Source: Trichoplax adhaerens (taxonomy: Eukaryota; Animalia; Placozoa). From it: a DNA stretch of 64,000 bases. Of the stretch, positions 32,728 to 58,665 are shown piece by piece. The stretch lies in NCBI RefSeq assembly GCF_000150275.1, contig NW_002060984.1:110908-174907 (forward strand), in the 5' to 3' direction. The notes under the pieces were generated by a model. That model did no database searches, was not told the DNA's origin, and saw nothing but the letters and a program-made list of their open reading frames with translations. Numbering within the stretch: position 1 is the stretch's first letter; each line of letters begins with the position of its first letter. A program made the position numbers and the translations under genes.

Positions 32728-32940
32728 TGTAAAGTAACTTAGTATTGTGATAAAAACTGTTAGCCATGTTTAGTATTATGTATATTAGCGTCTTTTATAT
32801 ATTAATCCTATGATACATTTAGTAGACCATAATTATAGACTGTAAGGATAGACTCTATGCTAGAATACAGAGGACTATATGCAGTAAGGTGTTGAGCTGT
32901 TAAAAAGGTTTAAGGTAGAAAAAGAATTGTAAATCATATA
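32728..32940. mobile_element. Truncated inverted copy of family A
   Basis: gtaacttagtattgtga...ctgttagccatgt...actctatgctag...atgcagtaag...tgtaaatcatat is the reverse complement of about 23260-23465. Confidence 0.6.
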
Positions 32941-34642: not shown

Positions 34643-35884
34643 ATGCCGAAAAAAGGCGCTCTCATTCATATTGAATTAAAGATACAAATTATAAAAGACC
34701 TAGAAGCTGGTAAATCACAAGAAGCTATCGCAAAGAAGTATAAAGTGAGAAAAACAACAGTTTTTTCTATTTCTAAAAGAAAAGATGAGTTTAGGAGGCT
34801 CATATTAAAATATCCCATTCCTGCATGTGGCAGAACACGACGTGCATTAAAGATGGGGGATTTCTGCGATATTGAAGAACCTCTATATCGTTGGTATCAG
34901 TTGCGACATAACAATAATTTGCCAGTATCTGGCTCCAGCCTAAAGGAAAAAGCCTTACAGCTATATAAATCTACTTATGCTGATGGTACTCAACGCCCTT
35001 TCATGGCTAGTAGAGGATGGCTGAATAAATTTTGTCGACGCTATGGAATTATAGAGAGTTCATTACAGCCTAATTCATGGTATAGAGAAACCCAAGAAAT
35101 AAATCGGTTTATTACAGAAGTGCAAGAGATAATTAAGAGTGACAGTTTTAGTAAACAACAAATATTTAGCGTAGATGAGAAAATTCTCCGTTGGAAAACG
35201 GTCGTTAGTCCCAACCCAACGGGTATATGTACTAACAAGAATAACCCTAAAATTTATAGAAGATCAAAAGCAAAATTAACATTATTGGCGTGCACTAATG
35301 CATCTGGTACTTACAAATTACCGTTAGCTGTCGTCGATAAAAATGGTATGCCTTCAACATTAGATGAAGAGCAAGTCCTCACGCTTCCGGTGACTTACTA
35401 CCGCGATGAAGATCTGCGAATGTGTAATGGCCTCTATGAAAGTTGGTATAACGACCAATTTAAGCCACGCGTAAAACGATTCTGCAAAGAAAACAATTTT
35501 CCTAGTAAGGTTTTGTTACTTGTAAGGGATACTCCAGCACATAACTGCATCACTAGCTCAATCTCAGATAGCGAAAAATTTATAGTTTTACGCATTCCGT
35601 CGAATATTGCTTTTGCTTTACAGCCAATGAATCAGGGAATTCTTACATCGTTAGAAAGCCATTATCAAACTAAGTTGTATGATTATGTCATTCACAAAAG
35701 TTCAGAAAAAAAGAAGCTTATACTAAAAATTATGTCAAAATTGACCGTTAAAGATGCGATATTCTGGCTGAGTGATAGCTGGAATGAAGTTAGTTCAAGC
35801 TTTTTGAGAAAATGTTGGAATCATATATTTGCAAATGTAAGACAAGATATGGATGAGGATGTACCTTTAGTTGATATGGATTAA
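34643..35884 (+). CDS. pogo/Tigger transposase-derived protein (CENP-B/Jerky/TIGD-like), probably domesticated and catalytically inactive
   Basis: Intact 413-aa intronless ORF. It has an N-terminal psq-type HTH (KIQIIKDLEAGKSQEAIAKKYKV), a CENP-B HTH (LYRWY...LPVSG..LKEKA...FMASRGWLNKFCRRYGI) and a DDE_1 domain (IFSVDE; LTLLACTNASGTYKLPL; LQPMNQGI). The second and third Asp are altered. Confidence 0.9.
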   Translation: MPKKGALIHIELKIQIIKDLEAGKSQEAIAKKYKVRKTTVFSISKRKDEFRRLILKYPIPACGRTRRALKMGDFCDIEEPLYRWYQLRHNNNLPVSGSSLKEKALQLYKSTYADGTQRPFMASRGWLNKFCRRYGIIESSLQPNSWYRETQEINRFITEVQEIIKSDSFSKQQIFSVDEKILRWKTVVSPNPTGICTNKNNPKIYRRSKAKLTLLACTNASGTYKLPLAVVDKNGMPSTLDEEQVLTLPVTYYRDEDLRMCNGLYESWYNDQFKPRVKRFCKENNFPSKVLLLVRDTPAHNCITSSISDSEKFIVLRIPSNIAFALQPMNQGILTSLESHYQTKLYDYVIHKSSEKKKLILKIMSKLTVKDAIFWLSDSWNEVSSSFLRKCWNHIFANVRQDMDEDVPLVDMD

Positions 35885-38800
35885 TAGCAAGCTAGCAAAT
35901 TTAATGACATTATATACTATATGCGAATGGAGACGTAAGATACACCGTATAAGCTATAGAAGACTACCGTACTATTTCTAGCTTCTCTTAAGAAATTCAA
36001 GCCTTCAGCAATAAAAGAATTTTTTAAATTCGATAATGTAATAATTTGAATGTAGTCTTTGATGACGGTAAAACTTAGGAAGGATTATGCATTTCTATTT
36101 GAAGGCCGTATTTGGAGGGAGTTAATCTGTTATCTTCTAGCATAAGTGATGCTTTCTCTTTAAGGATGGATAATTAATTAGTAACTTTATGATTGCCGAT
36201 TGTTGCTAAACGCATAAGATCGTAGTTTGAACTAAAACTCGAATTTAGATCATAAGCTGAGTACGATTACCGAACATAATTTTGTTATATATAATCTAGA
36301 TTATTTGACTGTACTATGCCGGTTTTGATTATTTATAGTAATACGCATTAGCTCAATGGAAAGTCTGGTAATATTTCTAAATGATTGACGGAATCAGTTC
36401 TCAGTATAAACACAAGAGGGACTTGATTTAATGCCTATGTTTTCAGCTATAGGAAAAGTATATAGAAGTAATAAACTGTCTAATATTTGAAATATTTTAT
36501 AAGCGTAATATTTACGATACTCCTGATATTATTGTTCATAGCATCGTAAAGTAATCAAAGTACAGCATATTGAATTAAAATAACTAAATAGCATATAGCT
36601 TTGTTCCTAAACGAAATAATAATCAGATACGACATACAATGTTATACGTTTTAATTAATTCTTGAGTATTATTAGTATTTTTTTTGTTTAAATAACAATA
36701 ATGCAAATTGATAATGAAGCCTTAAAAATTTTAACAAATAAATATAATACATTACATGTACTAATTTGATATGCGCCTGATACTGGATATCATGTATAGT
36801 TAAATTGTTTCCCTAAAATCCTACAGCTTACATTCTCGAAAATATTAGATCACAATAAGCCTTCTTACGGGTTTTAAATCAGGTGACCCAACTAGTAGTA
36901 CAACAAACTTTGAGAAAAATTCCAACAACTGCAAATCAGCAGTTATAGCTGAGTACCGCATATCTATTGGCAATAGAGAGAGCATAAATGCTAGTTAATT
37001 AAAATGCATTTTGAAAATGGCATAAGCAGTCATATATGGTTTGACATACGTAAATAAAATCTAATACAGATAAATAATTCAAGCCCCCATTCAGAGAAGC
37101 TACACGTAACATATATTCCCTGATATTTAATTCTATAGCTACTTCTAGGCTCTTATTAGTATAAGTAATGGCAGATATTTTAACTTCCGTTTTAGACAAT
37201 TTTTCCTTATTATAATATATTAGTCATTGTCTTGAATGTAAAGCTCACCGCCATCATATCAAAGAATAAATTAAACGGAATGAGAGCGTACTGAATATTG
37301 CTATCTGTTGCAGCGTACGGATGCATTACTTTTAGCCAATTTCATTCCAAAATTGAGGACTAAGCTTTCATCATAAGATTCTGAATATAAAATTTAAAGG
37401 CAATTTTATCAATCTTAAATATTAAGGAGTTACGAAGGCTATTCAAGAAATTAAAATTTGATGTATCTACTATTGGTTAGTGCTCCTTACGTGAAAAGAT
37501 CAAAGAATGGGTAATGTCAATTTACTATTCGAATTTGAACTATTACAGGTATCGCTAAATGACTTTATATGCACGACCTACAGTATACCTGAAAGCTTTT
37601 ACTATTGACTCTCTGCTTAAATCAATTCACTATTAGCAGCAAAACGTTTCTGAATCTGGAATTTATTTAACAGCTATTATAGAGTGACTCATAAACTTTA
37701 TCTGTTAGCATGCTAATACCTTTATCTTCTATCGTACTTAAATTATGCCCATATTATATCTTCCGAATATTGTATTAATACTAGGTTCCAAAGAGCCCTA
37801 GCATACATTTCCCTTCCAGGATTATAATACCAATGATAACCTCCGCATGTTTCCGCTTTCTAAATTTCGATTCTTGATTCCTATCGTTTTCAGTACCGAT
37901 ATGACTTGTTTTCGTTGTGATTGCTATATATAGCTCCTTTCAATGAATTTCATACTATCTGAAATCTTTTGCGAATGTTATGCTCGCATTAAAAGTGTTA
38001 AGAAGAACCTAATGAAATTATCTCTTATGATTATCTCCCTTCAGTAAAATTGATAAATTTCCAGCTAGTTAAATTGTTACCGATACTTTAACATACGTTA
38101 AAACATGCGTACAGAATATAAATTTCATGTCACCAAATTGAGCCATACATGTATAATAATAATACGTCTACTCATCAAATTTTTCAAATTTGTGGATTTA
38201 TGTAGGATCTATTTATCAAGTTTAAAAATGAGAAGTCTAAGGTAACCATTGGTAGTCAGATCAATGGATGTGTTACTAATGTTAATGACTTGTTGATTGA
38301 AAATTCTTATCAGAACGGTATACAATCAATGTATTCGTAGCATTCTGCACAATTATTGTGTTCGCAATGAAGTTACGGATGAATTTAGCTGTGAATGTAA
38401 TGTAGTAATAAATCAGCAAGGATGCAAAACAGCATATTTGTATAACGTAACATTTAAATTAATTTAATATAATATAAATAATAAAGAATGAAACAAATTG
38501 CACTGGACTAAAATAATGCAATTAAGGAAATAATAAACTGAAGTTGATGTAAGCTGAGCAGCAAAAGATACAATATAACGTACATAAGCAGATGCTTAAC
38601 TTACGCTATACCGATAATAATCTCAGTGCAATATCTCAAGTTGATTAGCCATATTATAGTTATTCTCATGCTCTTGATGTTTTAATTAATTAATTTTAAA
38701 TCATCCCTAATTATAATATCAATGTACTGCAGCGGTTCGACTTAGCTCGATCTTTTAACTTGAAGAATAAGCAAAAATATCAAGACTTTTGTAATTTCTC

Positions 38801-38905
38801 TAATCTATTGCTAATCCAAATTGATTTTAACTGGTGCAATAAGAACAACAAGTTTAAATATCTAACATTAAATCATCTTATGAGATCTTTCAATCTTGCA
38901 AGCTG

Positions 38906-41329
38906 ATGTCTGATGCGAAAGAAATTCGAGAGTCAACAACTGAAGAGGTGCAAATTTTTTATGAGAATACAGAAATAGCAGATTATCAAAGTTACGACTG
39001 CTATGGAGTTGAATTTGCTCAATCAGAGGATCTAGTAACAGATAATGAAAGAACAAACAACGCTAACTTGCATGATTTATCGAATTGGACCAAATTAGAC
39101 GAAATTGTTGGTTCTTCAAGTGGTTCACCAGATGGCGGTACCAGCAAAATTAATAAAACACAGAATGTGGCCAATTGTCATTGTCCGTGTTGCCTGTATC
39201 ATCATAGTCCTGTCCAACCTACTGATCAGGTTATTCTCAATCAGCTCTTAATGGGTAAAAAAAAATTCTCAAAGATTTGGTTTAAAAGATATCCTTGGCT
39301 GTCAGTTTGTGTACTCAGCAAAAAACTATATTGTTGCTTTTGCAGATATGTAATACGACATAAATTACTAACGTTTAGCTCACTATCAGATGATCTATTT
39401 GTGATAACTGGACTTATCCATCCTAAAAAGATTCTATCTCGAATTTCTGATCATAACAAAAATAAATTTCATTCAATGGCGAAAGTAAAATGGGAAGACA
39501 TTCATAAAGCTGGTGAAAGTAAGGAATTAGATTATCCAACCATGAAATTACAAGGTTCTCGAAGAAATGGATTACTTACCCAGTTTCACGGAATTCGTTA
39601 TCTACTACGACAAGATATCGCGATTCAAAGTCAAATTAAAACAGACGGCAATTTATTGCAACTACTGAATCTTTTTGCAAGCGAAGCTAGAAATAATCAT
39701 ATTAAAGATTGGCTTTCAACTGATCAATACACCAACTTGGACATCATAAATGAACAAATTACGATAATGGGTCATGCTGTATTGCGATCATTACTTAGTC
39801 GGATTGAATGCAACACTCCTCTTTGGTATTCTATAGTCGTAGATGAAACAACTGGTTTGGCCAAATGGGCACAATTTTGTGTATCCATTCGATGGGTGAA
39901 TGATGATTACATCATACATGAAGATCCAATTGGAATAGTTAATTTGCTGGATAGTCCTTTAGATTCACTTGCAAGTACTTTAAAGAATATTCTACTTCGT
40001 TGTGGGCTTCCGATCTCTTATTGTCGAGGGCAAGCGTATGATGGTGTGGCTAAAATGTATGGCAAAAAAGACGCTATAGCATCTGAGATTAAATCTGAGT
40101 ATCCTGCGGCAATTTGTGTTCCAAGTTTTATGCACTCTTTAGATGTATGCATTCAGGAATCAGTTAGAAAGATATCGTTAATGCACCAATGTCTAGAAAC
40201 TATAAGAGCTATTACTAAATTTATAGAATTCTCAAGCACACAACACAATCATTTAAATACAACGTTATTAAATGTAACGCGCAGTAAAACCGATATTAAA
40301 CCTCTTTGTCCAACAAGATGGAAGGTAAAAGCCAAAGGTATTGAAGTGTTATTAGAAGACTATAAAGATATTATAGAGATGGTGAGAAAATCAAGTAAGA
40401 CTAACTATTACGAATACCGTTACGGCATAGAGCCAGGCGCACTTCTATCTTCCCTTGAAAATTTTGAAACATTGTTTGGCTTTGAATTAGGAATGATAGC
40501 TTTTCGTACTTCTGAATACGTGTCTACCGCATTACAGCAAGAAAATATTTCCATATTGGAAGCACTTTCGGCGGTTAATCTTGCTATAGAATTTTACGAA
40601 AATCAGCGTAATGAAGAATTATTTGATAGCTTTTATAATAAAGTCATTAATAAAGCGGAACTTTTGAATATTACTTTACCAAGTCTAGGAGAAAAGTTAA
40701 ATATTGGCGATGGTGCAATTCCAATAGATCAATCCTGCACCATCAAGGATTATTACCGATCTATATATGAACAAGCCTATGATCTGTTTGCAAACGAACT
40801 CAAGGATATTTTTCTGAAGAATAATGAGTTACCAATTGTTTTGACGATTGAATCACTTTTAATCAAAGCTGCTAATTCCGAAAAATACGTCGATGAATTC
40901 GAGCAGCTACAGAACTCGTGCTATGGTAATGATATAAATTTTGAAAAACTGAAACTCCAGTTATGCATATTACCTGAAATTATATCTCTTGCTTCTTCAA
41001 AGTTAACAAAAGTTACTGATGTCAGTATCATTGGCAATGCAATTAATAGGTATAGTTCATGCAAGTCAAAACTTATTGAAATTCATAAATTGATTAAACT
41101 ATACCTAACTATCCCAATAATAATTCCTAATTCTAGTACAGCGTTATCAGTATTAACCCGATTATCTTCCTATCTGAAAACCGCTATGGCAGAAAATAGT
41201 TTCAATTGCTGTTTGCTCATGTATGTACATAAAGATTTATCAGATCAACTTAATTTAAACGATATAGTAAATCAGTTTATTGATGTGAATCCCGATCGTA
41301 GAAGATACTTCGGTAGCGGTAAATCATAA
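38906..41329 (+). CDS. hAT transposase-derived protein (TTF-type zinc finger, ZMYM1/THAP12-like core, hAT C-terminal dimerisation region), probably domesticated
   Basis: Intact 807-aa intronless ORF with WFKRYPWL..LYCCFC..H....H (ZnF_TTF-like), YSIVVDETT..QFCVSIRWV, RGQAYDG, LCPTRW and a C-terminal LYLTIP...LKTAM..LLMYVH. The catalytic ERSFS motif is replaced by STALS. Confidence 0.9.
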   Translation: MSDAKEIRESTTEEVQIFYENTEIADYQSYDCYGVEFAQSEDLVTDNERTNNANLHDLSNWTKLDEIVGSSSGSPDGGTSKINKTQNVANCHCPCCLYHHSPVQPTDQVILNQLLMGKKKFSKIWFKRYPWLSVCVLSKKLYCCFCRYVIRHKLLTFSSLSDDLFVITGLIHPKKILSRISDHNKNKFHSMAKVKWEDIHKAGESKELDYPTMKLQGSRRNGLLTQFHGIRYLLRQDIAIQSQIKTDGNLLQLLNLFASEARNNHIKDWLSTDQYTNLDIINEQITIMGHAVLRSLLSRIECNTPLWYSIVVDETTGLAKWAQFCVSIRWVNDDYIIHEDPIGIVNLLDSPLDSLASTLKNILLRCGLPISYCRGQAYDGVAKMYGKKDAIASEIKSEYPAAICVPSFMHSLDVCIQESVRKISLMHQCLETIRAITKFIEFSSTQHNHLNTTLLNVTRSKTDIKPLCPTRWKVKAKGIEVLLEDYKDIIEMVRKSSKTNYYEYRYGIEPGALLSSLENFETLFGFELGMIAFRTSEYVSTALQQENISILEALSAVNLAIEFYENQRNEELFDSFYNKVINKAELLNITLPSLGEKLNIGDGAIPIDQSCTIKDYYRSIYEQAYDLFANELKDIFLKNNELPIVLTIESLLIKAANSEKYVDEFEQLQNSCYGNDINFEKLKLQLCILPEIISLASSKLTKVTDVSIIGNAINRYSSCKSKLIEIHKLIKLYLTIPIIIPNSSTALSVLTRLSSYLKTAMAENSFNCCLLMYVHKDLSDQLNLNDIVNQFIDVNPDRRRYFGSGKS

Positions 41330-44300
41330 TATGATGCTTATTTTATGTGTCTGTTAGATTCCTTTACTCATATACTTATTCTATGACATTATAGCAATTA
41401 CTTCCCTACAATAGTATTTATTACTTTGCTATCATACGCGTATGCAAGATTCATTTACAATATGAATTCTAGCATGCTATATGGTATTTGGCAAAATCTA
41501 ACTTTATACTGTACTCAATATGTTAACGTGATGACAGTGGTTTATCGAATCAGATCTTAAAAGCGAATCGTTCAAGACTATTTGTTTGTAATAAGGTTGT
41601 ATTAAATAAATTTGAAAAGTAAAAATTCACCTAAAAACTTTGGCATCAAGTATTTGAATAAAATTTCGCAGTAATTGAAAGATCAAGCAAAGATTAAGTA
41701 CGATAATACACGTAACCCTCCTGATACTGATTTTTACTATTAAAATTTAGTTTTTTTTACGCATGGATACTCGTATATTTCATTTTTATCACCTAATTTT
41801 AAACGAAATACCTACTGAAAAATATATTTAGGCCACAATTAATCAATGCTGCACATAGTTAGCAATTATAATCAGAATAATGTTAAATATATCTTTTAGT
41901 ACATTCCTATAATTGCATTTAGGAAGAGTTACTTCTTGCTAAATTATCCGTAACCTATTGGTATTATACTTGATTCACATTTTTATAGTAGAATCAGTAC
42001 ATACTTTATCAAGTATAGTAACTACGATATATTTTGTGAATTTTGCAAACGATGGGGTAACGGCAAAATTACTGCGCAGAATACTTATATACCTATCCTT
42101 GCTAGCTTATCTACTTCCATACTTTGTAATTAAATGTTTATAAATATCATTAAGATTAAAGAAATAATTTTAATTTTATTAAGGACCGTTTAAGTTTACA
42201 TAGAGTTTTAGTTTGGCAGTCAATATTCTAATGTTGATTTTAATTAACCCAAGAAAGCACTTTCATCCGATTTATGAAGTTTTTGCTTCCATATCATTTT
42301 TACAATTATGAATGAAGATTTAACTCTCACACATAAAATTCGCAAAAAGTAATTTCTGTCATAAGAAGATGTGAAAATTGAAATTTGCAGCTAAGAAACT
42401 AAACGGATTACAAAAATATCAAACTATAGACCTACCGTCAGGCTTTTCTCCCCGAGATATAGCTACAGTACGATTCTAACGTCAACGAATTCCCATCGTT
42501 AAGAGATTTCAGCATACTACACACTTCTTCTAGGTAAAACTGAGCCCAGAATTTATTGAAAAATAAGTCAATTTACAGTAATATAAAATTAAAACTACAT
42601 TAATTCGATGTAAATATCAGGAGATAGATATTATTATTAAACTATACAATTATCGATTAAAATTATGTAAAATATCATAGAAAAATTATTATCAATGCAT
42701 TGCTAGATAGGTTTTGTTATGAAAAATATGTTTCGGTTACTATGCGAAAGTTACTGCGTAAATGGAAGATAGTTTTAACCATCTTATATATAAAAACATT
42801 ACATTATAACACATTTGCTGTTCTACTATCCTTGAAGCAATGTACCAGTTTGATGATCTCGTTTTGAAATTAAATTCTAATCGCTAGACGTCCCCAAGAA
42901 AAGTCTACGATGCCTTATGTTGTACACTTGCATGTACTTCTATATGGTTCAAGCCACGATTCATATTTCATCTACATGGTTATAACTGTTTCTTTTCTTA
43001 TTATGCACCATCCACTGTTCTGGGATGACAGGCTTGGCATTATAAAAAGTTTAAAGCGTAGGACATTATGAAGGAAAGAGTAACTTACTTCTTATTACAG
43101 TTTATAACATGGACCTTGAAATTTAACTTTGAATAATGGTAGAGCTATAAGAATGGAGCAAATCAGGACTGGAGCTGGGTCCAATCTCGACAATGAGTCA
43201 ACGAAAGACGGTCATGACTGTGTAAACATGGGATCTATTTACTGGTGGCAGTCAGTTCTGAGAATTAGATCATCCTTGAGAAAGACGTTCCATTATTAAT
43301 GAGATAAGAAATCAGATAATATACCAATTAAACATATCCAAAGTATCCGCATGTAAAGCATCGAATAGGCACGAGATCAACGCAGCGTCCAAATAAACGT
43401 AAGATATACAGTATTTGCAAATCAAAACTATGTACTGTAAATATATGACATAGATGATGAAGTATAAAATCCGAAAATAATAATGTGAAGTAATTAAAAA
43501 ATTTCATTCAAAAACATGGAATAGGCGCGAGATGCAAGACCAAAATCGCGTAAAATTAAACGTAAGACGATGATTGTTGGTCATAATTGATTATGTCTGA
43601 GTAATTAAAGGCCTTTAATNNNNNNNNNNNNNNNNNNNNNNNNNNNNNNNNNNNNNNNNNNNNNNNNNNAAAATTTTCCACATCAGAATTACGCGCCATT
43701 ACCAACATCTTAGCTCTGCTAGATTTTCTAAGGAGGTTCTGCTCTTTATTTTCAATTACGAACGGTCACCTATTGAGATCCAGGACTGTGTGTAATTGCT
43801 ACTTTGTAAAATTAAATGCTTACGAAACTTCAATGTTGCCTTTCAATATAGCTATAGCATGATCAGCTTCTATGGAAATTGCCATAATTAATTCCAATAT
43901 TTGATCTCTAATTACTGCTTTTTAGTTGTAAATAAAAGAAGATATGAATGTTGTTGAGCTGGTACTAATTAAACCCGCATGAGAGTGATCAAATACACAA
44001 TCATAAATGCATCTTTATATATCTAAAGAGTAAGGCTCGAATTTCAATTTATTAATCTTAAAGCCTAAGAGAATAATTTACAGTGAGGAATTAATTATAC
44101 TGCACTAGTTACGAAGACGTGAGTTTAGGCGTAGTAGCTTTCGCAACTATCGCACTATTAGGGGCACAGGAGTTAAAGTAAGACTTGAGGTTTCTTACAC
44201 TACTGCGGCATTTGGTTATTATCCGTTGATAATTGTATGTAATGAGTATTAATAATTAAATGCATTATTTGAATAAACCTCATAAGTTTTTAGTTTAGTA

Positions 44301-45074
44301 AAGAAACATACTAATATAGATAACTACCGTATAGATTACCACAATATTTTTATAAAAAAATTACAAGAGTTGTGATCATTACGTCCTATGTTGTAAAAAG
44401 TCTTACGTGGTCAAATAAAACATGAATGATATCATTCTTGCATGTGAAAAGTAGAAATCCAGTTTATAATCTATAGTAAATCCATACGCATTGAGACCAT
44501 AAACCGCGATCTCCACGAAATATCAACTAGCTGCAATCATATTCTTATCTTTAAGCTTTTAATTTCATTAAATTGCTTAAGCTTAGTAGTTCGATTATTT
44601 AAATTATGAAAAAGTTCCTTATTTAAAGTATGAAACTTCTATAAATGATTATGCATTTACTAGTCCTTGGACGTATACTGTACCCAATATTAAAATTAAT
44701 TGATCATGCCCAATTAGCACACACAGTCTAAATGGAATAGAAATTATGCAATTCCTTGCTTAGGGTATTTTATTCAGAATCTAATGTTTTATTAGTTAAA
44801 TTTGTAATCGACAGGGAAAGAATGGATTTTCAGAAGTTCAAACTGGAAAAATCGTACAAGCGTCGGCATGTATGGATTGACAGACTCATAAATTCTTGAT
44901 TTAAACGGCTATACTGATATAATACCGTAGCATTAGTTTACAAGTAAAGTTAGTTCTACACACACATAATAATGTGAATATGCGTTAAAGTTGATGTGCT
45001 ATCAAGATGACATTTATTTACTATGCATATCAGTGTTGATTAACGTTCAGAAATAAAGCAATGGAATAAGGGGT

Positions 45075-45527
45075 TGTTACGATGCGTAAGCTCGTCCTAA
45101 TTATTGAGTAATATTAAATGTTGTTTGTGTGGATTGACGTTTTATTAATTGTCATTTCTTCATACACTATAATCTGCTTAATCTTTCAGGAGTTTCTGAC
45201 GAGACTATAAAAGGCTGGTACCTGAAGATTCCTTTTTAGTTAGTTAGTTCGTTAGTAGGTTGGATAGTCAACTAATTTTTCAATTGATATTTAATTGTAA
45301 AGACTATAATCTTGGGTGCCAAGATTCCTTCAGTAATAAATGATAGTAAATCTCTGACTATCTCGTCTACATCATCTGTGACGCTATAATTATACCATAG
45401 TATTCGGTCGTTGGAACTGAATTATTTGGTGATATAGCTAATCTCGCCTCTTTAAGTTAGTAAGTAGCGTTCTCCACCAGGATTGGCATGTGTAGACTAC
45501 TTTGTCACTCACTAGTAGTGTGTGACA
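45075..45527 (+). mobile_element. Solo-LTR-like element (453 bp)
   Basis: Termini TGTTACG...TGTGACA with a perfect TSD GGGGT. It contains TATAAAA (~45206) and AATAAA (~45335). Confidence 0.8.
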
Positions 45528-47684
45528 GGGGTAGAGCAAAAAATAATAGCTCCGACCAGATAGGCGTATAGCCTTTTTAAGTGAGACATCCTTTCATATT
45601 GCAAATTTACATATGTCACGGTATCTTTATGATTGTAACAATTACGGCATTTATTTTTACAACAATTTTACCATCCAGAAACTACCCAGAACAAAGCTAC
45701 TGCTGTAAAGGTTTTCTTCTCATTTTGATAGTCCCTATACTGTAAGTAACTAATATTCGCGACTCATGAATAAGTAAATAAACTACAGGAATTATAGTGA
45801 CATAAGGTTCAAATTACTTAGTATAGTTAGTTGAGTAAACAAATAATGTTTTTTCCATCTAATATACTTTTAATTGCAATATTACATATAGCATTCCAGT
45901 ACATTATTGGGTTTGAGAAACATTCGCCTGAAAAGAGTTCAAATATAATAAATAATTAAGATTATCATCTACGTACCAGCTACTGAAATTGTTGCTGTTA
46001 GGTGCACGATACAGCTTTGATGAGAATTAAAGATATATATGAATCTTTAAACATACAACAATGGCTATGCGTCGATCAGACTAAACAAAGAATTGTATGT
46101 GCTTCTACTGTATTCACTTCGGCCATATGGACTTATATTTAATTATCTATGTCTCTTTCTAATTTCAAAATCTCTAAAAGTTCTTATTCGTAATTTTTCG
46201 AATATTTTTGCATTGTTTAACAGTAAGATCATAAATATTTTCTTAGTATTGCACCCTCTGGCTCTACGTAAAGTATACTGCTGACTGCACAGAATTCGCT
46301 GCACATCACAACCGTTATAGTAGAAAGTACCATCGAGAGTATATTATGGATTATTTTAAAATCAGTCCTGGCGTATGATTAGGTATCTGGTTCTTCGAAA
46401 CTATGACCTTTGGTAAGTGATTTTACGGTCTCTACAACCGTTTCCTATAAAACTGACTTTTTGAGCATCTTACCTTAAGCTTGTTAGCAGTTATTGCAAA
46501 TACTTGCTTGCGTTAGGTGTCAAGTTTAACTTGTTGTACTGCATCGACAATCATTCTCATGGTCATTACTTCTATCCATATTACGTAACAGAATAATTAA
46601 AATTCTAGGTTTTAAATATAGTAGATATGGAGGATAGCTGAAAGAATTAAGTGAACGAAGAGCGCTTTAGAGGATAATGATGTTCTTCATCTGTTATACT
46701 ATCAACTCTGCCGGAAGTTCTCGAAACTCCAGGAGACTGATTGACTAAGAAGTATTTGACTTCATCGATAGCTGAATTACGCATTTGGGCATATAGTAGC
46801 CCAAATGAAGAGCCATTTAAAAGTTTAAATATGCAGCGAGTTGGAGTAAATACTAAAGGGGTGTATCAAGTTAGGACGACTCCCAGTCACCGTTGTTAAA
46901 AATATATTTCAACGAGATAATAAATGGCAGATTTCATGTTTGATGATAATGTAAAATCCATTAGCTTTTAATTTTTAATGTACAGCGATAGTATTAGAAA
47001 ATAATTGTCTAATTAAGTGCGTGGCAGTATTTGTATTTTGACTGACTAAGGTAGAATATTGTATAAGTTATTTTAGTGACTAAGTCGTGATGTTTAAAGG
47101 TTATTTTCTGGATTTTATAAAGTTTAAAAGTTAGAACATTCTGTTAGAAATAAGATTTGATATCTTTAATAGTTGGCATATTAGCTTTATAACATTTTGT
47201 AAAGAAATCTTAAGATAAGCCTTGTCTGATCTTTGAGTAATTTTTGTTTTAAAAGATGGAAAGCACTTTTCTTATGTTAATTTTAAGAATGATTAGAAAA
47301 TTCTGATCCTGTACAATACTAACAAAGGTAGATTACTAAAATATAACCTAGATCTCATATGTTAATATAACAACCAGGACAGATTTATAATTCATGTTGA
47401 TCTACCAAAACCTAACACCAGTAGCGAAGATAAGTATCCTCCATAGATACAAATCACGTAATAAATCCTCTCGAGCAAATATTTCTCAAGCTATCTTCAT
47501 CAAAATTCTTTTATGTAATAGTTTAAATTATATTATTGTGCAGTAAAGGACCGACAAGCGAATCCTTTATAACTTTAAATACGAAATTATTCTTACTTTA
47601 CTGTAGAAAATGAGTAGAAAGTGATAGTATCCTTTAGTGTTACCTTGTCAAGGCAAGGCATTGGCATCTTTCCTATTTTACTAC

Positions 47685-47960
47685 TTTATAAGGTTTTATA
47701 TAGATTACTATCTGAATATTTTATGAGCAATCGCCTAATTTAAAGAAAGGGCGTTTGATAGTCTATTGAGATTAAAATAAATTTGAAACGACAATAAAAC
47801 CCTATCCTCAAAGAAAGGACTTTCATAACGTGTCAGTATCGTATTGCAATGTGCAGTATAGTATAATCCATGCCGTACCGTATACTGTAACACACCATGC
47901 TGAAACACCAATTGTCAATGCTAACGCCAAAAATTAAGTATTAACTGTCGTGAAAGATTT
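47685..47960. repeat. Old dispersed repeat; partner at ~60560-60900
   Basis: Shared blocks ttttatatagattacta, tgagcaat.gc.taat.taa.gaaaggg.gtttgat and aaaaccta/aaaacccta. Confidence 0.55.
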
Positions 47961-49480: not shown

Positions 49481-50587
49481 TTAATCCAATTGTCTGTCAT
49501 TAAACTTATCTAGACTGCTCGATATCGCATTTATCCTGACAGGTAAGCTATCAACTAAGGAAATAATCTCGTCAACTGCAGTTTTATTCCATAATTTTAT
49601 AATCTCCCCTTCAAAATCTACCGGCATTATTGAAGGAATATTGATAAGCTTAGATTTAATGCCTGTCCATACATCTTCAAGTGGATTAAGTGCAGCATTA
49701 TGGCTTGGCCAAGATTGTATTTCAAGTCCAAAACGTTCCTGGCTTAACTCATTAATAACTTTACCACGTCGACCTGGCAGCCTACAGCCTATACATATGA
49801 ATGCTCTATCCAAAGATGATAAATAAGGTAATAGGTATTTTTCGTACATGTCAACATAGGCTGTAGCTCCCAAATATTTTGCAATCCTAATGACTGGTCC
49901 GACGCTTTCACAACTGATACAGCCCCAAAGAGTTATGACAGTGCAGCATCTATGCAAGGAAAGATTGCCATCCTTATTGATATCCCGATCAATTGCTTCT
50001 CGATTTCGACTAGAAATTCTAGCAGAAGAGCTTAGTATCTTCGTAATATCAAACTTACTCTCGCCAATCCAAACAACTTTACGCCAGTCAGGTATTTTCC
50101 ACTCTTTGAGTGTTGAAACCCAACTCTTCTCTAATTGAATATTTTGAACTGCTAATTCTTTTTTTTTTACCGTCGGGTTCCTGAGAGAAAATTCCGTTTG
50201 AGAGTTATTAACACTTTTATCTGTTTCCTTATCAACATCTTCAATATTTGTCGCAGAAAGCTGAGTAGTTAAATTTACATTAGGACTCATCGATTTTGAG
50301 CTAGCAGGAGTCTGAATACTTAAACTGACATTAGGATTCATAGATCTCGAGTTTTGTAGAAGAAAATTAATGACTCCTGAATTATCTTGATCTAGTGCAA
50401 TCTTAATTTTTGGACGAACCACTTTTGAATTCCTGCCTCTCAATTTGTAGTATGTTCCAGTGACCTTTGAATATGGCAAATCTAGTTTTTGAGCGATTTC
50501 CTTGAACTTTACACCTTGTTTACGTAATAATAGTATACGAATTTCATCACTCTCTTGTAATTCTTTCGTCGAACTCATCGTAATCAA
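49481..50587 (-). CDS. Tc1/mariner (DDE_3) transposase-derived protein, probably domesticated and inactive
   Basis: Intact 368-aa ORF with an N-terminal HTH (LRKQGVKFKEIAQKL), WRKVVWIGESKF (canonical WxxVLWSDESKF), ITLWGCIS, YVDMYEKYLLP, WPSHNAALNPLEDVW (canonical WPxQSPDLNPIENLW) and LVDSLPVRINAI. Confidence 0.85.
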   Translation of the reverse strand: MITMSSTKELQESDEIRILLLRKQGVKFKEIAQKLDLPYSKVTGTYYKLRGRNSKVVRPKIKIALDQDNSGVINFLLQNSRSMNPNVSLSIQTPASSKSMSPNVNLTTQLSATNIEDVDKETDKSVNNSQTEFSLRNPTVKKKELAVQNIQLEKSWVSTLKEWKIPDWRKVVWIGESKFDITKILSSSARISSRNREAIDRDINKDGNLSLHRCCTVITLWGCISCESVGPVIRIAKYLGATAYVDMYEKYLLPYLSSLDRAFICIGCRLPGRRGKVINELSQERFGLEIQSWPSHNAALNPLEDVWTGIKSKLINIPSIMPVDFEGEIIKLWNKTAVDEIISLVDSLPVRINAISSSLDKFNDRQLD

Positions 50588-52950
50588 GCTCTAATGTTAA
50601 TTGAGGCTTTAGCTAATGTATGTCTATAGGATCCATAAAAATACTATAGAAGAGTTATTCTATAAATCTGCGATAAATCCGATTTCAGTAGTTTGATGTG
50701 GATTTAATATAATGCAAGCATCAATGCCATCAACTCTAGGAATTGGCAATCTAATTGAAGAAAGAAAACAACCACAATAATGTCGCCATGTTTCAAAATA
50801 ATTTAAAATCATAAGATGAATTAGGATAAATAAATAGACTGCAGCAATATATATGACAATTTTTCTACTATAAAATTTGTATTTCTACCCTGCTATCTAA
50901 ATACTCAATATCTAATATCTGCGTACTCGTATTACAGCGAAGAAATTTGCAGTAATCTTGCGATTGCCATTGAATTTGAGAAGCTAAACATTTCGTGAAT
51001 TTTAGCAACAGTTTGTTATTGTTCAGTGCATAAGCCTATAAATGATAATTAGTATACACTAAAAAGGAGTGAAGAACATTGTAGCTGAGAGTAATCGAAA
51101 CTAACCCAAGAAAGTAGTGCATAATTAGCAAAGATCCTTAATTAATTTGACCCATAGAACGAAGATGAACTTTCTATTAATATTAATATTACATCGCTTA
51201 GATATAATATTACTGTGATGCGTAATGTACTACTTTATGGTTTGATTTAAGAATATTCTAATTCTTGATGACGTGAATAGGATATACGAACCATGGTAAT
51301 GCATTCACAGTAATACTTTATTTAGCAGATTTATTAGCTTAACTAATAAAATAAAAACGAATCTTTTGGAAAAACTACAACAATGGACATTTAACGTATT
51401 CGTTCATAGCTGGGTTTTACCAAATGGTAATACTGCTCTAATAAATTTCTGGTGGCATAGAGCCTGATCCAATCCTTGAAGAAAAGAATTCACATCAATC
51501 AGCCTTCTTTATTTTTATTCTGCAATAAAATAACGGGTTAATTAATTAAGTTCATTAGATACTGCGCGTGTAGTGAAATAACGAAATATATTAGCATTGA
51601 CATTGGTTCATTAATTGAGATATATGATCTGAATATTCCAGTATTTTAGTAAAACACTTGGATCGTGATTTACTGAATTAACTACAGGTAATTAATGCAC
51701 TCCAGTTTAAAATCCATTTTTTTATTCTTGTAACCTAAGACAAGGAGCGTTATTCAATATTGAATTAGCTTAAGGAATTTTCCGTTTTTTTGAGTTCAAA
51801 TAAAGTTATGGACATGCAGTACTATATAATCTTGGACATCGTACGCGAGGATTGTTGCATATAATTCTTAGACATAAATGTATTATACCGTCAATTTAAG
51901 CTTATTCACAAATCTGATTAGTGACTTACATTATCCAATTTATGGCTTAGTTTTAATACGACAACCTAATACATAATAAATAAATATGAATTTGCCTGGT
52001 TTTTTTTAATTTCAACCTTGTAATGCACGAAGTCACATACGTGTATGGTATTTGTAAGAGTGAAATCGTGCATTTCCGTATTATTAATAATTTTGAAAAT
52101 TTATCCCCACGAAACTCATAATACAATTTGCCTAAAAGCTAAGAAGTATTATAACAGGAATCAGTGAGATCTTATAACAGCATGCCTGAATGATCATACT
52201 ACAACTCGCAACCTTCACTGCTAGACTTTTGCTAAACCAATAATAATTTATAAGGTATGAGAAGGTTAATTCGATTTATTCCTTTAACTATTACAGGTTA
52301 ATTTTCGGCATTTTGCTCATTGCACATTATACGAATGCTATTAGCAATCTTACGGATTGTCATGATTACTTGATTTTTGCTTAATCTAAAATATCAAGTA
52401 ATACTTTTTAGCTTTCTATCAGGGTATAACTCATTACAGTACAAAGTAATCTGGACATACTGAAATAATCTTTTTGATTTGTATTTGACAAATTCTAAAA
52501 AAGCTTTCAATGTTCTATGATAGCATTTCGCCACTTAAGAAGACGAAATTACGGTATCACAATGAATAGAATCGCTCCATTATTAATGACTTAATTATTA
52601 ATTGTAATAGATAAGACAAGTGGCAGATTTCATTCTTAAGTAAGGGCAATGGAAATTACAGTTGTATCAACTTAACTGTATGGTGGCCTTCTCTGAAAAT
52701 GAAAAAGAAATGCTTTACTCAAAACTTTGGATGCGATTAGCAGCTGCATGGAACGATGTCCATAAAAATCGGTAATTATAATCTTTCAAACATGGTAAAA
52801 ATGCTAACTATTATCATAGCACTGACCAAACATATCTTTCCTTAGTCACTTTTCTTCTTATATTTACAGGCTGAAAGAACTCATACTATGAAACATTAGC
52901 AGCGTAACATATTTTACTAATTGAAAAGAAAACTGAGGTTATTCTATAAG

Positions 52951-55883
52951 GTAATAAGGCTAAGAAACAACGTTGTGAAACGGAAGCAAATTCATTTTAC
53001 TGTATATGTGATTCGTATACCTCTGTATCATTTCGATGCCACCTAACACCGAAAGTAATAGAATTATATTTCTACCACTTTAAATTTAAGATTAACAGTC
53101 AAGATAAGATTTGGGCACCTATTATTTGCTGTAAAGGATGTGATAGCTCTGAGATAGTGCTATTCGAAGGAAAGAAATTCTAGGCCATTTGCCATTCCTA
53201 TGATGTGGCTTACTCCCAACAATCATCCTAACGATTGCTATTTTGGGAAGGCAAATATTCCTGGCTGCCCAGACACGATTAATAACAATTTTACGTATCC
53301 TAGTGCAACATCAGGCATCTTACCGACACCGCTTGGCGATAGTATTTCCGTACCAAAACCGTCAACTAGCCAAAATTTACTAGCCTTACGTGATGGTAGC
53401 AGTCTTAATTTTCAAGCTTCCACGGAGGTATTGAAAGCAAATAATTCTAGCAATGAGCAAACAAAATCTGAAGTCAGTTGCAATAGCAATGAAGTTGTTG
53501 ATGGCGAAAATGTTAGTAATAACTGGCTCATCGTAGACCATCATCAAGTATTTAACCAAAAATCTTAAGAAAATGAAAGTCACCTCAATACTGTTCATTC
53601 TATCGTAAGTAATTATAAAGACAGATACAAAGACTTCCATGAAGACCTTAGTAGAGCTGTTGTAAACAGATACTTTCGAGAACTATATTATTAACGACTT
53701 TAGAATGGCAGTCATCAAAAGTAATAGCAATAATGAAGTTAACAGTGTAAATCTAAAGATCATCGATGATGATAACCAAGATTCACAAGATCTTGATTAT
53801 CTACAATCCAAGCATATCTTCGACGATAATTATATCATACAAAGTTTTCATAGCCAGTCTAGTTCTGAGCACGATTCTAATCATATCCAAGACATAACCA
53901 TAAAGGGCAGTGATCACTCAGATGATGTCTATGTTAAAGATATTAATAGCAATCATGATAATAGCTTTTGATAATAGCTTGACTAATAAGAATGAGTTTA
54001 ACGCTACGAACAATAATCAAACTGAAATAAAATCTGATAGTAGCAGTAAGCAAGTAATACAAGCTTTACCTATTTATCCTGATAATAACCTCATTAGCAT
54101 CAGTAAAGGTCATAAAAATGCTGTAAAAAGGAGTCGTTGGAAAACTAGGCGGACATCTAATTCTGGTCATGTTCCATTCAATAGTACTAATGGCCCGCCT
54201 CTAAACTGTAAAACAAATCCTAACTATTTTTGTTACATTTGCAGATCATATATGACAAGTAATCAGAAAAGAAACCTATGTACTTCTACCAAGCAACTGT
54301 ATTTTGACTATTTTGGATTTAAAGTAAGCCATCGATGTAAAAGTTGGGAACCGTGATATTGCTGTTCAACTTGCAATACTAGATTACATCAGTGGCACAA
54401 TCGAAGACGAAGCTCTAAGCTATTTGCTATATCTATGATTTGGTCGAAGCCCAAAAATCATCCAGTAGATTGTTATTTTTGCCAAACAAACATCAATGGT
54501 TATTCCACAAAAACGAGAAAAAACATTAAATATTCAACAGGTACATCAGCATTTCGACCAATAACACATAGCAGTAAATTTCCTATTCCCATTCCACCTG
54601 GTATGCAAAAAGAGATGTCTAATGATAATAACACTACTGATGACCAAAGCATGCTGAAAAGGACGATATCCATGATAAGGATTACTAATACAACAGTTCC
54701 CAGGATAAGGACCGCACATCACACCTTATTACTGAAGGTGAACTGAATGACTTGGTAAGAGATCTAATTATGAGCAAATCACAATCCGAACTATTAAGTT
54801 CAAGACTAAAGTAATGGAATCTGCTTGAAATTAGTGTTAAAATTACCTTATTCCGAGAAAGAAATATGGTTCTAGCAAATTATTTTAAGATAGTAAGATC
54901 ATTTTGTTACTTCTATGATATTTACGGATTATTTGGCAGATTCAATCAAGATCATTAACCATCGGATTGGAGATTATTTATTGATTCAACGAGATATAGT
55001 TTAAAGGCGGTACTTCTCCACAATGGCAATAAATATCCTTCTGTACCGATTGGATATTCTGTCACATTGCAGGAAATATACGAAAATTTGGCAATTCTCT
55101 TACGTGCAATAGACTTCGAGCAACATCAATGGCATACTTGTTGTGATTTTTACATTACTACACCACTACTTGGAATGCAAACCTGATTTACAAGGCACAG
55201 TTGCTTCCTCTGTCTATGGGATAGCCGCGAGGTAAGTGCTCACTACATTAGGAAAAATTGGACGCCACGCTTGCATCTTATTCCTGGTTACAACAATGTT
55301 ATACATCCACCATTAATAAAAGTCAAAAATATCTATTTACCCCCTCTTCATATCAAGCTAGGTTGATGCAGACTTTCCTTAAAGCATTGAATACAAATAA
55401 CAGGGTTTAATTTATTTATCAAAAAAATTTCCATCGCTTAGTTACGATAGACTATTTCAAGGGAGTTTTATGGGCCCGCAAATTAGAGATCTTATGGAGG
55501 ATGATAAATTTAAAGAAGTGTTGGAACGTAATGAATTGCAAGCTTGGAATTCCTTGAAATCAGTTTGCAATAATTTTCTCGGCAATCATAGAGCCAAAAA
55601 TTATAAGGAACTGGTGAATTCACGGTTGTCAACTTACCATAGTTTAGGATGCCGAATGACGCTTAAAGTTCACTTTTTACATTCTCACCTTGATTTTTTC
55701 CCTCCTAACCTTGGCGATATTAGTGACGAACACGGAGAAAGATTCCATCAAGACATCGCAAGAATAGAGAAAATTTATCAGGGTAAAGTCAGTCCTTCTA
55801 TGATGGGTGAATATTGCTGGATGCTCCAACGTGATGTTCCTAGTGCTACCTATAAGAAAAAGGCGAAGAAAGCTCATTTCTAG
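52951..55883 (+). pseudogene. Decayed Chapaev3-type (CMC superfamily) transposase with a duplicated N-terminal Cys-rich domain
   Basis: Motifs across frames: FCYIC, KSWEP*YCCSTC, MIWSKPKNHPVDCYFC, ELNDLVRDL..SK..SELLSSRLK*WNLL, WRLFIDS...SLKAVLLHNGNKYPSVPIG, CFLCLWDSR, PLHIKLG, GPQIRDLM and KVHFLHSHLDFFPPNLGDISDEHGERFHQDI..YQG..MMGEYCW. There are several in-frame stops and frameshifts. The family was assigned from remembered motifs, not from a search. Confidence 0.8.
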
Positions 55884-58045: not shown

Positions 58046-58665
58046 TGTCACAACCACGTTTTTGTGACACAGGATCTCTACTTATCGTGTAAAACTTAGC
58101 TAAGTACGGCACAATCCCGACACTGAACAAGTGCTACTGGAACTACGCTTCCTATTAGAACACTAACTTCTCGGGTGTGGGACTACACTTCTTTGACCAT
58201 CACTAGGTTACTCGATTACACAAGCAGTTAAGCTTAGGCTTTTGAACAGATAACTATCACTACAGTTTACTCTCTTCTATGCCTTTCTCCTCGTCCACAT
58301 TACATCATAGTTAGCCTTTATATACTTTCTAAGATATTTACTATTTACATTAATCTCACGTAGGAGATCTCACAACCATAACCTCCTATCCAGTAATAAT
58401 CTTACAACACGACTACAAATCGTGTCAGCATAAACAACTCTCTAACACAAAGGTTGCACATCATCAAGATTTATATTTCCCTAGTCTATCCTCCTATTCG
58501 AATACATACAAAATAACTAAGGACAGTTGATCATCAAAACACCTTACTAACAAACACCATAACACATCAATTTCCATCAATAACAAACACCATAACACTT
58601 CAATTTCTATCAATAACAAACACCATAACACTTCTAACTCATCACGACAAAAAGGTACCGTGACA
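58046..58665 (-). mobile_element. Solo-LTR-like element (620 bp) containing a 33-bp tandem repeat
   Basis: Termini TGTCACA...GTACCGTGACA, the latter being the reverse complement of the TGTCACGGTAC start at 8714. Perfect TSD AGCAC. Confidence 0.8.
58548..58634. repeat. 33-bp tandem repeat, about 2.6 copies
   Basis: Unit TAACAAACACCATAACAC(A/T)TCAATTTC(C/T)ATCAA. Confidence 0.85.

Follow-up and report, generated by a model that had tools for sequence, protein, structure and literature searches.

Results

Within the window, by which we mean the whole 64-kb stretch of Trichoplax adhaerens DNA that was analyzed, positions 34,643 to 55,883 hold three stop-free, intronless open reading frames (ORFs) of pogo/CENP-B-like, hAT, and Tc1-like origin, followed by a Chapaev3-like relic (Table 1). 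These transposase-derived frames are the only ones of at least 120 aa in the island, and elsewhere in the window there is just one, at 19686-20078. Chance cannot account for frames that stay open over such lengths (P 1e-13 to 1e-29), given that stops make up 7.8% of random codons in this DNA. A preliminary description of this DNA had reported a four-locus island with stop-free ORFs of 413, 807, and 368 aa, and its coordinates proved exact. Its question about copy number can also be answered, each of the four loci being single-copy in the 105.6-Mb genome. No credible terminal inverted repeats (TIRs) were found at any locus by an inverted-repeat search, as the description had noted by eye and as Wang et al. 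found likewise (Biol Direct 5:18, 2010); the search returned only short AT-rich pairs, 70 to 90% complementary, which bracket no ORF sensibly and were dismissed as chance. Each intact ORF lacks one or two catalytic residues and retains a DNA-binding module; alignment of each protein bore out the earlier claim that catalytic acidic residues are missing from all three. The base composition of the island matches that of the rest of the window.

Table 1. Loci, assembly gap, and repeats in and around the island (window positions)
Feature	Position	Strand	Remarks
Dispersed repeat, ~215 bp	32728..32941		At least 38 copies, 76-87% identity (all but one 81-87%)
pogo/Tigger (CENP-B/Jerky)-like gene	34643..35884	+	413 aa, intronless, single-copy, catalytically defective
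hAT (Buster/ZMYM1-like, DUF4371) transposase-derived gene	38906..41329	+	807 aa, intronless, single-copy, catalytic Glu lost
Assembly gap, WGS contigs ABGP01001158.1 / ABGP01001159.1	43620..43669		Intergenic
Dispersed repeat, hAT-Tc1 spacer	45074..45527		Copies 90-94% identical on many scaffolds; no TIRs
Older repeat fragments	47067..47818		70-78% identical to copies adjoining a solo-LTR-like family elsewhere
Tc1-like transposase-derived gene	49481..50587	-	Single-copy; two of three catalytic residues lost
Decayed Chapaev3-like relic	52968..55883	+	Single-copy, broken across at least 3 frames
Solo-LTR-like repeat, ~620 bp	58046..58666		TG...CA ends; at least 25 copies, 95-99% identity; right flank of the island

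The pogo-like protein shows the domain order of the pogo superfamily, CENP-B_N (1e-6) and HTH_Tnp_Tc5 (5.6e-19) followed by DDE_1 (3e-28), all above the Pfam cut-offs, and it matches the structure of the CENP-B DNA-binding domain (1hlv, E 5.6e-9). In an alignment of four sequences its triad is incomplete, reading D178 / R295 / N319; as D296 stands beside the lost second catalytic position, the protein may have residual activity. The genome contains a single distant paralog (24% identity), and the H2 ortholog, RDD37942.1 ("Jerky protein-like"), is identical at 411 of 413 residues (99.5%). Wang et al. entered this locus as TIGGER1-like, 1206 bp.

The hAT protein matches Pfam DUF4371 (2.7e-11) and is encoded by the sole DUF4371 locus of the genome; of its 73 ZMYM1-like relatives, the best are 35 to 42% identical. 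The zinc-finger residues W131, C135, C143, C146, H183, and H189 are invariant, D313 and D379 are retained, and the catalytic Glu is replaced by S744. The CxxH motif has lost its Cys (S407) and kept H410, the PTRW motif is present, and E and R of the SERxFS motif are replaced. Pfam finds no Dimer_Tnp_hAT domain in this protein, whereas the relatives have one. Altogether 38 of 119 family-invariant columns (32%) are altered, compared with 0 to 12% in 12 of the relatives themselves. Judged by these alignments, the protein appears to be a descendant of the family and not a functional transposase.

At the read level, positions 36901-42900, comprising the hAT ORF and its flanks, were compared with contigs from two DNA runs of a sister lineage (organism B), in which the ORF is present, collinear, stop-free, and without joints; 5 of the 45 differences in one run (X8) were not itemized. 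Of the changes in the ORF, 16 are synonymous and 8 nonsynonymous, against a neutral expectation of 30% synonymous (P 2.8e-4; worst case 0.005). The resulting pN/pS of 0.13 is lower than the genome-wide mean of 0.37 given by Kamm 2018, while the pS of 0.031 is in line with the genome mean dS of 0.024 from the same study. The constraint is visible only in the synonymous/nonsynonymous split, the total divergence of the ORF (0.99%) not being below that of its flanks (0.5 to 0.65%). The hAT gene is thus under significant purifying selection between orthologs of two Trichoplax lineages, across a shallow split with a dS of about 0.02 to 0.03.

The Tc1-like ORF encodes 368 aa from a TTG codon or 365 aa from the first ATG (49481-50578), which is the start annotated in H2. 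Its identity is agreed upon by an exhaustive HMMER search, the alignment to Sleeping Beauty (5cr4), and the fold; Pfam DDE_3 and HTH_Tnp_Tc3_2 gave no match, and the closest non-self relatives are 26 to 29% identical. Against 5cr4, the triad reads G/C/E (D175G, D268C, E304 retained), and 12 of 25 conserved columns (48%) are altered, compared with 0 to 19% in relatives. The AF2 model contains an RNase-H-like core and a confident helix-turn-helix (HTH; residues 12 to 52), only this first HTH being confident, and the best Foldseek matches are SB, Mos1, and SETMAR. An "SPD to NAA" change pointed out earlier is real, but the position is not catalytic. The H2 ortholog, RDD37943.1, is identical at all 365 residues (100%).

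The preliminary description had proposed to examine synteny and dN/dS in relatives. This comparison speaks for the hAT gene; for the pogo-like and Tc1-like genes, 2/413 and 0/365 amino acid differences from H2 are not significant, with P values of 0.40 and 0.06, respectively, at the local H1-X10 divergence in a test that is underpowered and uses H2 data at the protein level only.

ORF fragments of the Chapaev3-like relic lie in three frames at 53200-55883, and an N-terminal "W..P.NHP.DCYF" motif occurs twice. Supplement 2 of Wang et al. gives a tblastx match to Chapaev3-1_HM (E 1.3e-132) from window position 54968 and, in a second row, a weak match to hAT-17_ZM from position 52968; on the former match, the relic is assigned to Chapaev3 by sequence similarity. 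Pfam found nothing in the relic, and the Protein Atlas, searched with the C-terminal piece, returned eukaryotic clusters without names and, below a useful score, weak look-alikes of the RAG1 zinc finger.

The assembly gap lies 2.3 kb downstream of the hAT stop and 5.8 kb from the Tc1-like ORF with no ORF of at least 65 aa nearby, and, being intergenic and away from the ORFs, it raises no reading-frame question. In the H2 assembly, the pogo-like and Tc1-like genes share one 129,748-bp contig and have consecutive accessions, with no gene annotated between them. A 17.8-kb organism-B contig reaches ~7.8 kb past position 42,900, joint-free collinearity having been seen over 36901-42900.

The ~215-bp repeat precedes the pogo-like gene by 1.7 kb. 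The dispersed repeats do not qualify as MITEs derived from the transposases: TIRs are absent from them, and the young 620-bp family is bounded by TG...CA, in the manner of a solo LTR. Pfam found nothing in nine short ORFs of the spacers and right flank nor in ORF 19686-20078, and tRNA and Rfam scans of 30 to 64 kb gave no matches. Across the window, the TACAGTA/TACTGTA repeat occurs more often than expected (46 versus 16 times); none of the three ORFs has a dense promoter-type cluster of it upstream.

Transcripts, which the preliminary description had suggested looking for, were not found: four RNA-type runs (X21 to X24) contain ~0.00 of the sampled words of 34600-43600, the pogo-hAT stretch, and two of them (X21 and X22) gave no contig on 36901-42900, although silence is not proven thereby. 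Wang et al. similarly found no TE-like ESTs in Trichoplax. Searches of 1.8 to 5.8 billion proteins returned best matches of 29%, 42%, and 29% identity for the pogo-like, hAT, and Tc1-like proteins, respectively. Since the protein databases yielded no ortholog outside the H1/H2 cluster and no relatives at 50 to 90% identity, conservation is demonstrated only over a shallow split.

Discussion

The four loci were catalogued by Wang et al. (on ABGP01001158.1 and ABGP01001159.1) as nonfunctional transposable elements (TEs), the few Trichoplax elements with complete ORFs being described as single-copy, TIR-less, and without ESTs. Relative to that study, the catalytic loss, the selection, the presence in H2, and the adjacency of the loci are new.

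The clustering is strongly non-random. Four of 139 catalogued TE-like loci fall inside 21 kb (P about 5e-4) and 3 of about 6 complete-ORF elements inside 16 kb (P about 1e-6), so that about one-half of all complete ORFs of pogo, hAT, and Tc1 type are located in one 16-kb stretch of a TE-poor genome; the preliminary description was right to call this unusual. About 35% of window positions 30 to 64 kb is TE-derived or repeated, compared with 6.7% genome-wide (Kamm 2018). The simplest account of the co-location is a pocket tolerant of transposons, given that the island also contains the Chapaev3 relic, the solo-LTR-like repeat, and further dispersed repeats.

Our best reading, which we hold to be probable, if by no wide measure, is that in such a tolerant, gene-poor pocket transposases were recruited three times independently, to serve the host as proteins that bind DNA or chromatin without catalysis. 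In this scenario, elements of four unrelated groups (pogo, hAT/Buster, Tc1, and Chapaev3) would have inserted into the pocket at different times, and all would have lost their ends and become immobile. The Chapaev3 copy would then have decayed, and the other three would have persisted, each as a single-copy gene with an intact ORF and no introns. The encoded proteins would keep an N-terminal DNA-binding module (a CENP-B-type double HTH, a TTF-type zinc finger, and an HTH, respectively) and an RNase-H-like scaffold minus one or two catalytic carboxylates, and, as the former are kept and the latter lost, they are predicted to bind DNA yet not to cut and paste it, presumably functioning in the nucleus. 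The central mark of recruitment by the host is the purifying selection on the hAT ORF, and the pogo-like and Tc1-like genes are presumably maintained by the host as well. The domestication proposed earlier is thus supported in part, by single-copy status, missing TIRs, catalytic loss, DNA-binding modules, and selection on the hAT gene, while its transcriptional side, for which we looked, is not.

Such recruitment may be compared with that of CENP-B/Jerky/TIGD, ZMYM1/ZBED5, and other Tc1/mariner-derived genes. The pogo-like protein shares with CENP-B/Jerky/TIGD the CENP-B_N, HTH_Tnp_Tc5, and DDE_1 architecture, a single TIR-less copy, and a degenerate triad, but it is only 24 to 31% identical to any relative found and ends directly after DDE_1, without a C-terminal dimerization or acidic region. 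The H1/H2 clade of Trichoplax is the only place where it was seen, so it would have been recruited independently of the vertebrate genes and would not be their ortholog. The hAT protein, at ~800 aa, resembles ZMYM1/ZBED5/Buster proteins in its TTF-type zinc finger and DUF4371 RNase-H-like core, and in being single-copy and under purifying selection. The relatives found at 35 to 42% identity, in contrast, keep the catalytic Glu of S-E-R-x-F-S and the hAT dimerization domain, and several are multi-copy; probably, then, these are transposases. In the Trichoplax protein, the Glu position is taken by Ser, Pfam detects no dimerization domain, and nearly a third of the family-invariant columns are altered. 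The Tc1-like protein shares the Tc1/mariner fold, an N-terminal HTH, an incomplete triad, and an immobile single copy with Tc1/mariner-derived host genes such as the transposase domain of SETMAR. However, it falls in the Tc1 (DD34E-like) branch rather than mariner, carries no fused domain, lacks the first and second Asp of the triad where SETMAR is altered at the third, and has a low-confidence Ser/Asn-rich linker in place of the second HTH region.

The alternative that survives best, though we regard it as unlikely, is that the pogo-like, Tc1-like, and possibly hAT ORFs are dead insertions of a TE graveyard that have so far escaped stops, the mutation rate of Trichoplax being low and the insertions of no great age. 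The failure to find RNA evidence or, in protein databases, orthologs beyond H1/H2 fits this explanation, as do the underpowered H1-H2 comparison for the pogo-like and Tc1-like genes, the decayed Chapaev3 copy and other repeats in the same pocket, and the interpretation by Wang et al. of nonfunctional TEs. It is opposed by the significant synonymous excess in the hAT ORF at the orthologous locus and by frames of 365 to 807 codons that stay open at this local stop rate despite lost catalytic and many family-invariant residues. As 4 to 6% of random substitutions create a stop, column changes on the scale seen in the hAT and Tc1-like proteins could not accumulate under neutrality and leave the frames free of stops, and the adjoining Chapaev3 copy illustrates what decay looks like here. 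Moreover, no close active relative was found among the proteins searched, which makes it unlikely that copies from three families arrived recently and already dead.

It is improbable, in our estimate, that the three genes adjoin because they act together or are co-regulated as a defense, chromatin-architecture, or repressor module. The clustering does far exceed chance, DNA-binding domains are retained in all three, and placozoan chromatin loops, which have no known architectural protein, are linked to transposon-derived motifs (PMC12221973). Yet neither expression nor co-expression was found in the RNA-type runs, the genes have mixed orientations (+, +, -) with 3- to 8-kb spacers occupied by unrelated repeats, no dense TACAGTA cluster lies upstream of any of them, and the loop-anchor motif is a Mutator TIR and not a pogo, hAT, or Tc1 end (PMC12221973). 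Active cognate elements to repress are absent as well (Wang 2010; Kamm 2018); with no active autonomous DNA transposon known in the genome, the earlier "dominant-negative repressor" idea has no current target. We give equally little credence to a "nursery" locus, in which an insertion-tolerant pocket repeatedly turned stranded, unrelated transposases into host DNA-binding genes, the neighbors perhaps making up a lineage-specific and possibly co-regulated module for chromatin or genome surveillance; they might, for example, recognize transposon-derived motifs like those at placozoan loop anchors.

A TE trap in the sense of a piRNA cluster, also raised earlier, likewise gathers several unrelated TE insertions at a single locus, but traps carry fragmented, often antisense copies of active families, whereas here there are three intact single-copy ORFs without active relatives; the intact ORFs and the reduced Piwi/Tudor set of Trichoplax (PMC12147562) make this unlikely. 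Finally, an artifact, be it the mis-join across the gap that had been feared or foreign DNA, has hardly any probability left: the gap exists and the island is close to a scaffold end with duplicated sequence, but 19 runs (five studies, two organisms) contain the stretch or part of it, in 15 cases with half or more of its sampled words, the organism-B contigs cross 36901-42900 without joints, the gap-flanking genes are neighbors on a single H2 contig, and the base composition matches the rest of the window. On our preferred reading, the clustering would reflect insertion tolerance and not shared function.

Transposase domestication is well known and has been documented mostly in vertebrates, flies, and plants. 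The Trichoplax genome is very TE-poor, with no active transposons known, and with almost no transposons left, its surviving transposase coding capacity is informative on recruitment in early-branching animals. If the pogo-like and Tc1-like genes are silent relics, what remains is a small graveyard of TEs in which the hAT gene alone was exapted. As it stands, the locus provides a compact test case for whether the landing site influences the recruitment of an element, and it also bears on the role of lineage-specific DNA-binding proteins in an animal in which chromatin architecture has already been tied to transposon-derived motifs.

Results

A re-scan of the window, which takes up positions 110,908-174,907 at the far end of a scaffold of 174,907 bp (contig C1373; assembly of 105,631,681 bp in 1,414 contigs, roughly 30% GC), returned the ORFs of the transposase island with exactly the coordinates and frames first described. 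The island holds no other ORF of at least 120 aa, and only one more was found in the whole 64 kb. Since 7.8% of random codons here would be stops, the open frames of the pogo-like, hAT, and Tc1-like loci (365 to 807 codons) are not due to chance. The fourth, Chapaev3-like locus has a broken frame, with at least three reading frames. The supplement of Wang et al. 2010 contains all four loci letter for letter (WGS contigs ABGP01001158.1 and ABGP01001159.1); they are catalogued there as non-functional transposable elements (TEs), and the fourth is the sole "Chapaev" entry (PMC2871265; Chapaev3-1_HM, E 1.3e-132). That study described six complete-ORF elements (three hAT, three mariner/Tc1), single-copy and without terminal inverted repeats; because its sequences for our three intact loci begin at the ATGs of the ORFs found here, these are very probably three of the six.

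Within the Chapaev3-like relic, the N-terminal motif M(M/I)W..P.NHP.DCYF is present in two places that lie 1.2 kb apart and share 34% protein identity. This points to a pair of partial copies, nested or in tandem, or else to internal duplication preceding decay. In Additional file 2 of Wang et al. 2010, the sequence printed for the row "ABGP01000793.1 hAT hAT-17_ZM 1695 bp" begins at window position 52968. This sequence shares its contig, ABGP01001159.1, with the Chapaev entry, and the genome contains no other copy of it. The accession in the table therefore appears to be an error, and the 5' part of the relic is the probable source of the weak "hAT" call.

Features of the island and its surroundings, and related loci elsewhere in the genome (window positions unless a contig is named)
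Feature	Position	Strand	Remarks
ORF outside the island	19686-20078		at least 120 aa
TACAGTA-free stretch	29,018-37,579		around the pogo-like locus
Duplicated stretch	30812-31639		828 bp, 100% identical to the entire small contig C661
Dispersed repeat	32,728-32,941		roughly 215 bp
pogo-like ORF	34643-35884	+	413 aa
hAT ORF	38906-41329	+	807 aa
N run (gap)	43,620-43,669
Repeat	45,074-45,527		roughly 450 bp
Older repeat fragments	47,067-47,818
Tc1-like ORF	49481-50587	-	368 aa from TTG, 365 aa from first ATG
Chapaev3-like relic	52968-55883	+	frame broken
Chapaev3-like motif, first	53200-53260
Chapaev3-like motif, second	54435-54500
TACAGTA-free stretch	53,004-60,819		around the Chapaev3-like relic
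Young solo-LTR-like repeat	58,046-58,666		about 620 bp; TG...CA ends; copies 95-99% identical
Near-identical duplications near scaffold end	61346-62834 and 63278-63542		1.5 kb and 0.26 kb, 97-99% identical to C1371:89989-91770
Other DDE_1/DDE_3 locus	G000:C1396:1271245-1275156	-	ORF 1036-2613
Other DDE_1/DDE_3 locus	G000:C1411:7363514-7363975
Other DDE_1/DDE_3 locus	G000:C1409:3538201-3538524

The family assignments rest on several kinds of evidence. The pogo-like protein exceeds the Pfam cut-offs for CENP-B_N, HTH_Tnp_Tc5, and DDE_1 and aligns with the CENP-B DNA-binding domain (1hlv), while the hAT protein carries DUF4371 and has 73 ZMYM1-like relatives at no more than 42% identity. For the Tc1-like protein, Pfam gave no significant match; the protein hit 1,481 Tc1-type proteins at 26-29% identity in an exhaustive HMMER search and is alignable to Sleeping Beauty (5cr4). 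Its AlphaFold model (mean pLDDT 75) is confident in the helix-turn-helix (residues 12-52) and in the catalytic core, with Sleeping Beauty, Mos1, and SETMAR as the best structural matches of the model.

Residue alignments bore out the claim of a dead catalytic triad for all three intact proteins alike. In an alignment of four sequences, the pogo-like protein retains D178, has R295 at the second position, with an Asp at 296, and has N319 at the third, where a D-D-E paralog has Glu and another relative Asp. Both invariant Asp residues of the hAT protein are retained (D313 and D379), and the Glu of its S-E-R-x-F-S motif, placed by profile alignment on AASERTFS of Hermes, is replaced by Ser744; we take this Glu to be the catalytic E572 of Hermes. 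In CxxH, the Cys has likewise given way to Ser407, with PTRW and the zinc-finger Cys/His residues invariant. The Tc1-like protein shows D175G and D268C and retains E304; the change from SPD to NAA, previously read as catalytic, does not fall on a catalytic position.

Loss of conserved residues extends beyond the triads. At 38 of 119 columns that do not vary among its 12 closest relatives, the hAT protein carries another residue (0-12% for any one relative); the same is true of the Tc1-like protein at 12 of 25 columns that at least 90% of 29 relatives share (relatives, 0-19%). Random substitutions in these ORFs would create a stop in about 4-6% of cases. Judged from sequence, residue change on this scale without any stop would imply that the frames have been maintained while transposase-specific constraints were lost.

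A more direct look at selection came from comparison with the Trichoplax sp. H2-type lineage. Protein RDD37942.1 of H2 is 99.5% identical to the pogo-like protein (2 of 413 residues differ) and RDD37943.1 is 100% identical to the Tc1-like protein (0 of 365), with no gene between the two in the H2 annotation. The hAT model is missing there owing to TE-protein masking in MAKER (Kamm 2018); its ORF occupies the same place in two DNA runs, from different studies, that contain a second, H2-type organism, on contigs collinear over 36,901-42,900 without joints. Against sequencing run X8, the hAT ORF has 24 listed differences, 16 synonymous and 8 nonsynonymous, and no stop (pN/pS 0.13); a neutral model with the observed mutation spectrum expects 30% synonymous changes (P = 2.8e-4). 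If all five unlisted X8 differences were nonsynonymous changes in this ORF, the worst case, P would be 0.005 and pN/pS 0.22. The pS of 0.031 is near the genome-wide dS of 0.024 between the T. adhaerens reference (H1) and H2, and pN/pS is under the genome mean ratio of 0.37 (Kamm 2018). Purifying selection, which the preliminary description expected of domesticated genes, is thus supported for hAT; for the pogo-like and Tc1-like genes, protein differences from H2 taken at the local H1-X10 divergence are not significant (P 0.40 and 0.06), and high significance would be reached only with the genome-mean dS as the local value.

Overall, H1 and X8 differ no less in the hAT ORF (0.99%) than in its flanks (0.5-0.65% within 36901-42900), and its third codon positions diverge by 1.6%, 2.8 times the flank rate (P 0.006). 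This points either to unexpected constraint on the intergenic DNA or to faster mutation of synonymous sites in this region.

Each protein matches only itself genome-wide, except for one 24%-identical pogo-like paralog, and inverted-repeat searches gave only chance-level AT-rich pairs, in agreement with the reported lack of terminal inverted repeats. The genome has three DDE_1 loci, one DUF4371 locus (the hAT ORF), and one DDE_3 locus elsewhere. The remaining DDE_1/DDE_3 loci are also single stop-free frames (361-550 aa), the D-D-E triad being retained in the C1396 paralog, and are candidates for further recruited transposases.

The search for expression gave no support: next to none of the words sampled from 34,600-43,600, the stretch with the pogo-like and hAT genes, occurred in four RNA-type runs, which is not proof of silence; two of the four had no contig on the hAT stretch. 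Wang et al. 2010 found no TE-like ESTs (PMC2871265).

The N run, suspected of hiding a mis-join, is intergenic, 2.3 kb past the hAT stop and 5.8 kb ahead of the Tc1-like ORF, and separates two consecutive WGS contigs. No sizeable ORF was found near it, so no reading frame depends on it, and the genes flanking it adjoin on one contig of the independent H2 assembly. A 17.8-kb contig of the second organism reaches about 7.8 kb past 42,900, and we infer that it stays collinear beyond the compared stretch. The identical and near-identical stretches near the scaffold end represent redundant assembly, haplotigs, or segmental duplications that arose recently.

Discussion

The physical clustering of unrelated transposase loci is indeed unusual: under uniform placement, finding 4 of 139 catalogued TE-like loci inside 21.2 kb has a P of about 5e-4, and 3 of the 6 complete-ORF elements inside 15.9 kb an expectation of about 1e-6. 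The simplest reading is that a transposon-tolerant pocket brought them together. About 35% of window positions 30-64 kb is TE-derived or repeated, the genome-wide share being 6.7% (Kamm 2018), and spacer ORFs have no Pfam domains. A shared function of the clustered genes would be the alternative; given the mixed orientations, the repeat-filled spacers, and the lack of promoter-type TACAGTA clusters at the island, nothing indicates it, and we consider it improbable that the clustering itself is functional. A TE trap, also proposed, is unlikely in its piRNA-cluster form, since the ORFs are intact and Trichoplax has a reduced set of Piwi/Tudor genes.

Two observations concern the surroundings. 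The heptamer TACAGTA/TACTGTA, known from the literature as the promoter-linked ACAGT repeat of Trichoplax, occurs 46 times in the whole window (15.8 expected; 0 of 100 shuffles reached 46), with two long stretches free of it. The repeat at 58 kb, with at least 25 copies over many scaffolds and a strong C-over-G strand skew, looks like the solo LTR of a young retrotransposon family, in contrast to the literature view that Trichoplax has no active TEs.

Only five TE-derived transcription factors have been listed for Trichoplax, and no cluster was reported (Mukherjee & Moroz 2023; PMC10027918). Beyond the published catalogue, we describe inactivation at the level of residues and purifying selection acting on the hAT gene, and we show that the H2-type lineage conserves the arrangement and that the loci are clustered by statistical test. 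The observation of the preliminary description stands, and its interpretation as a cluster of domesticated genes is partly supported: we are fairly confident of host maintenance for the hAT gene at least, and the odds that it extends to all three lean slightly in favor. Trichoplax would then harbor a set of three such genes, whose physical clustering is unusual but probably passive.
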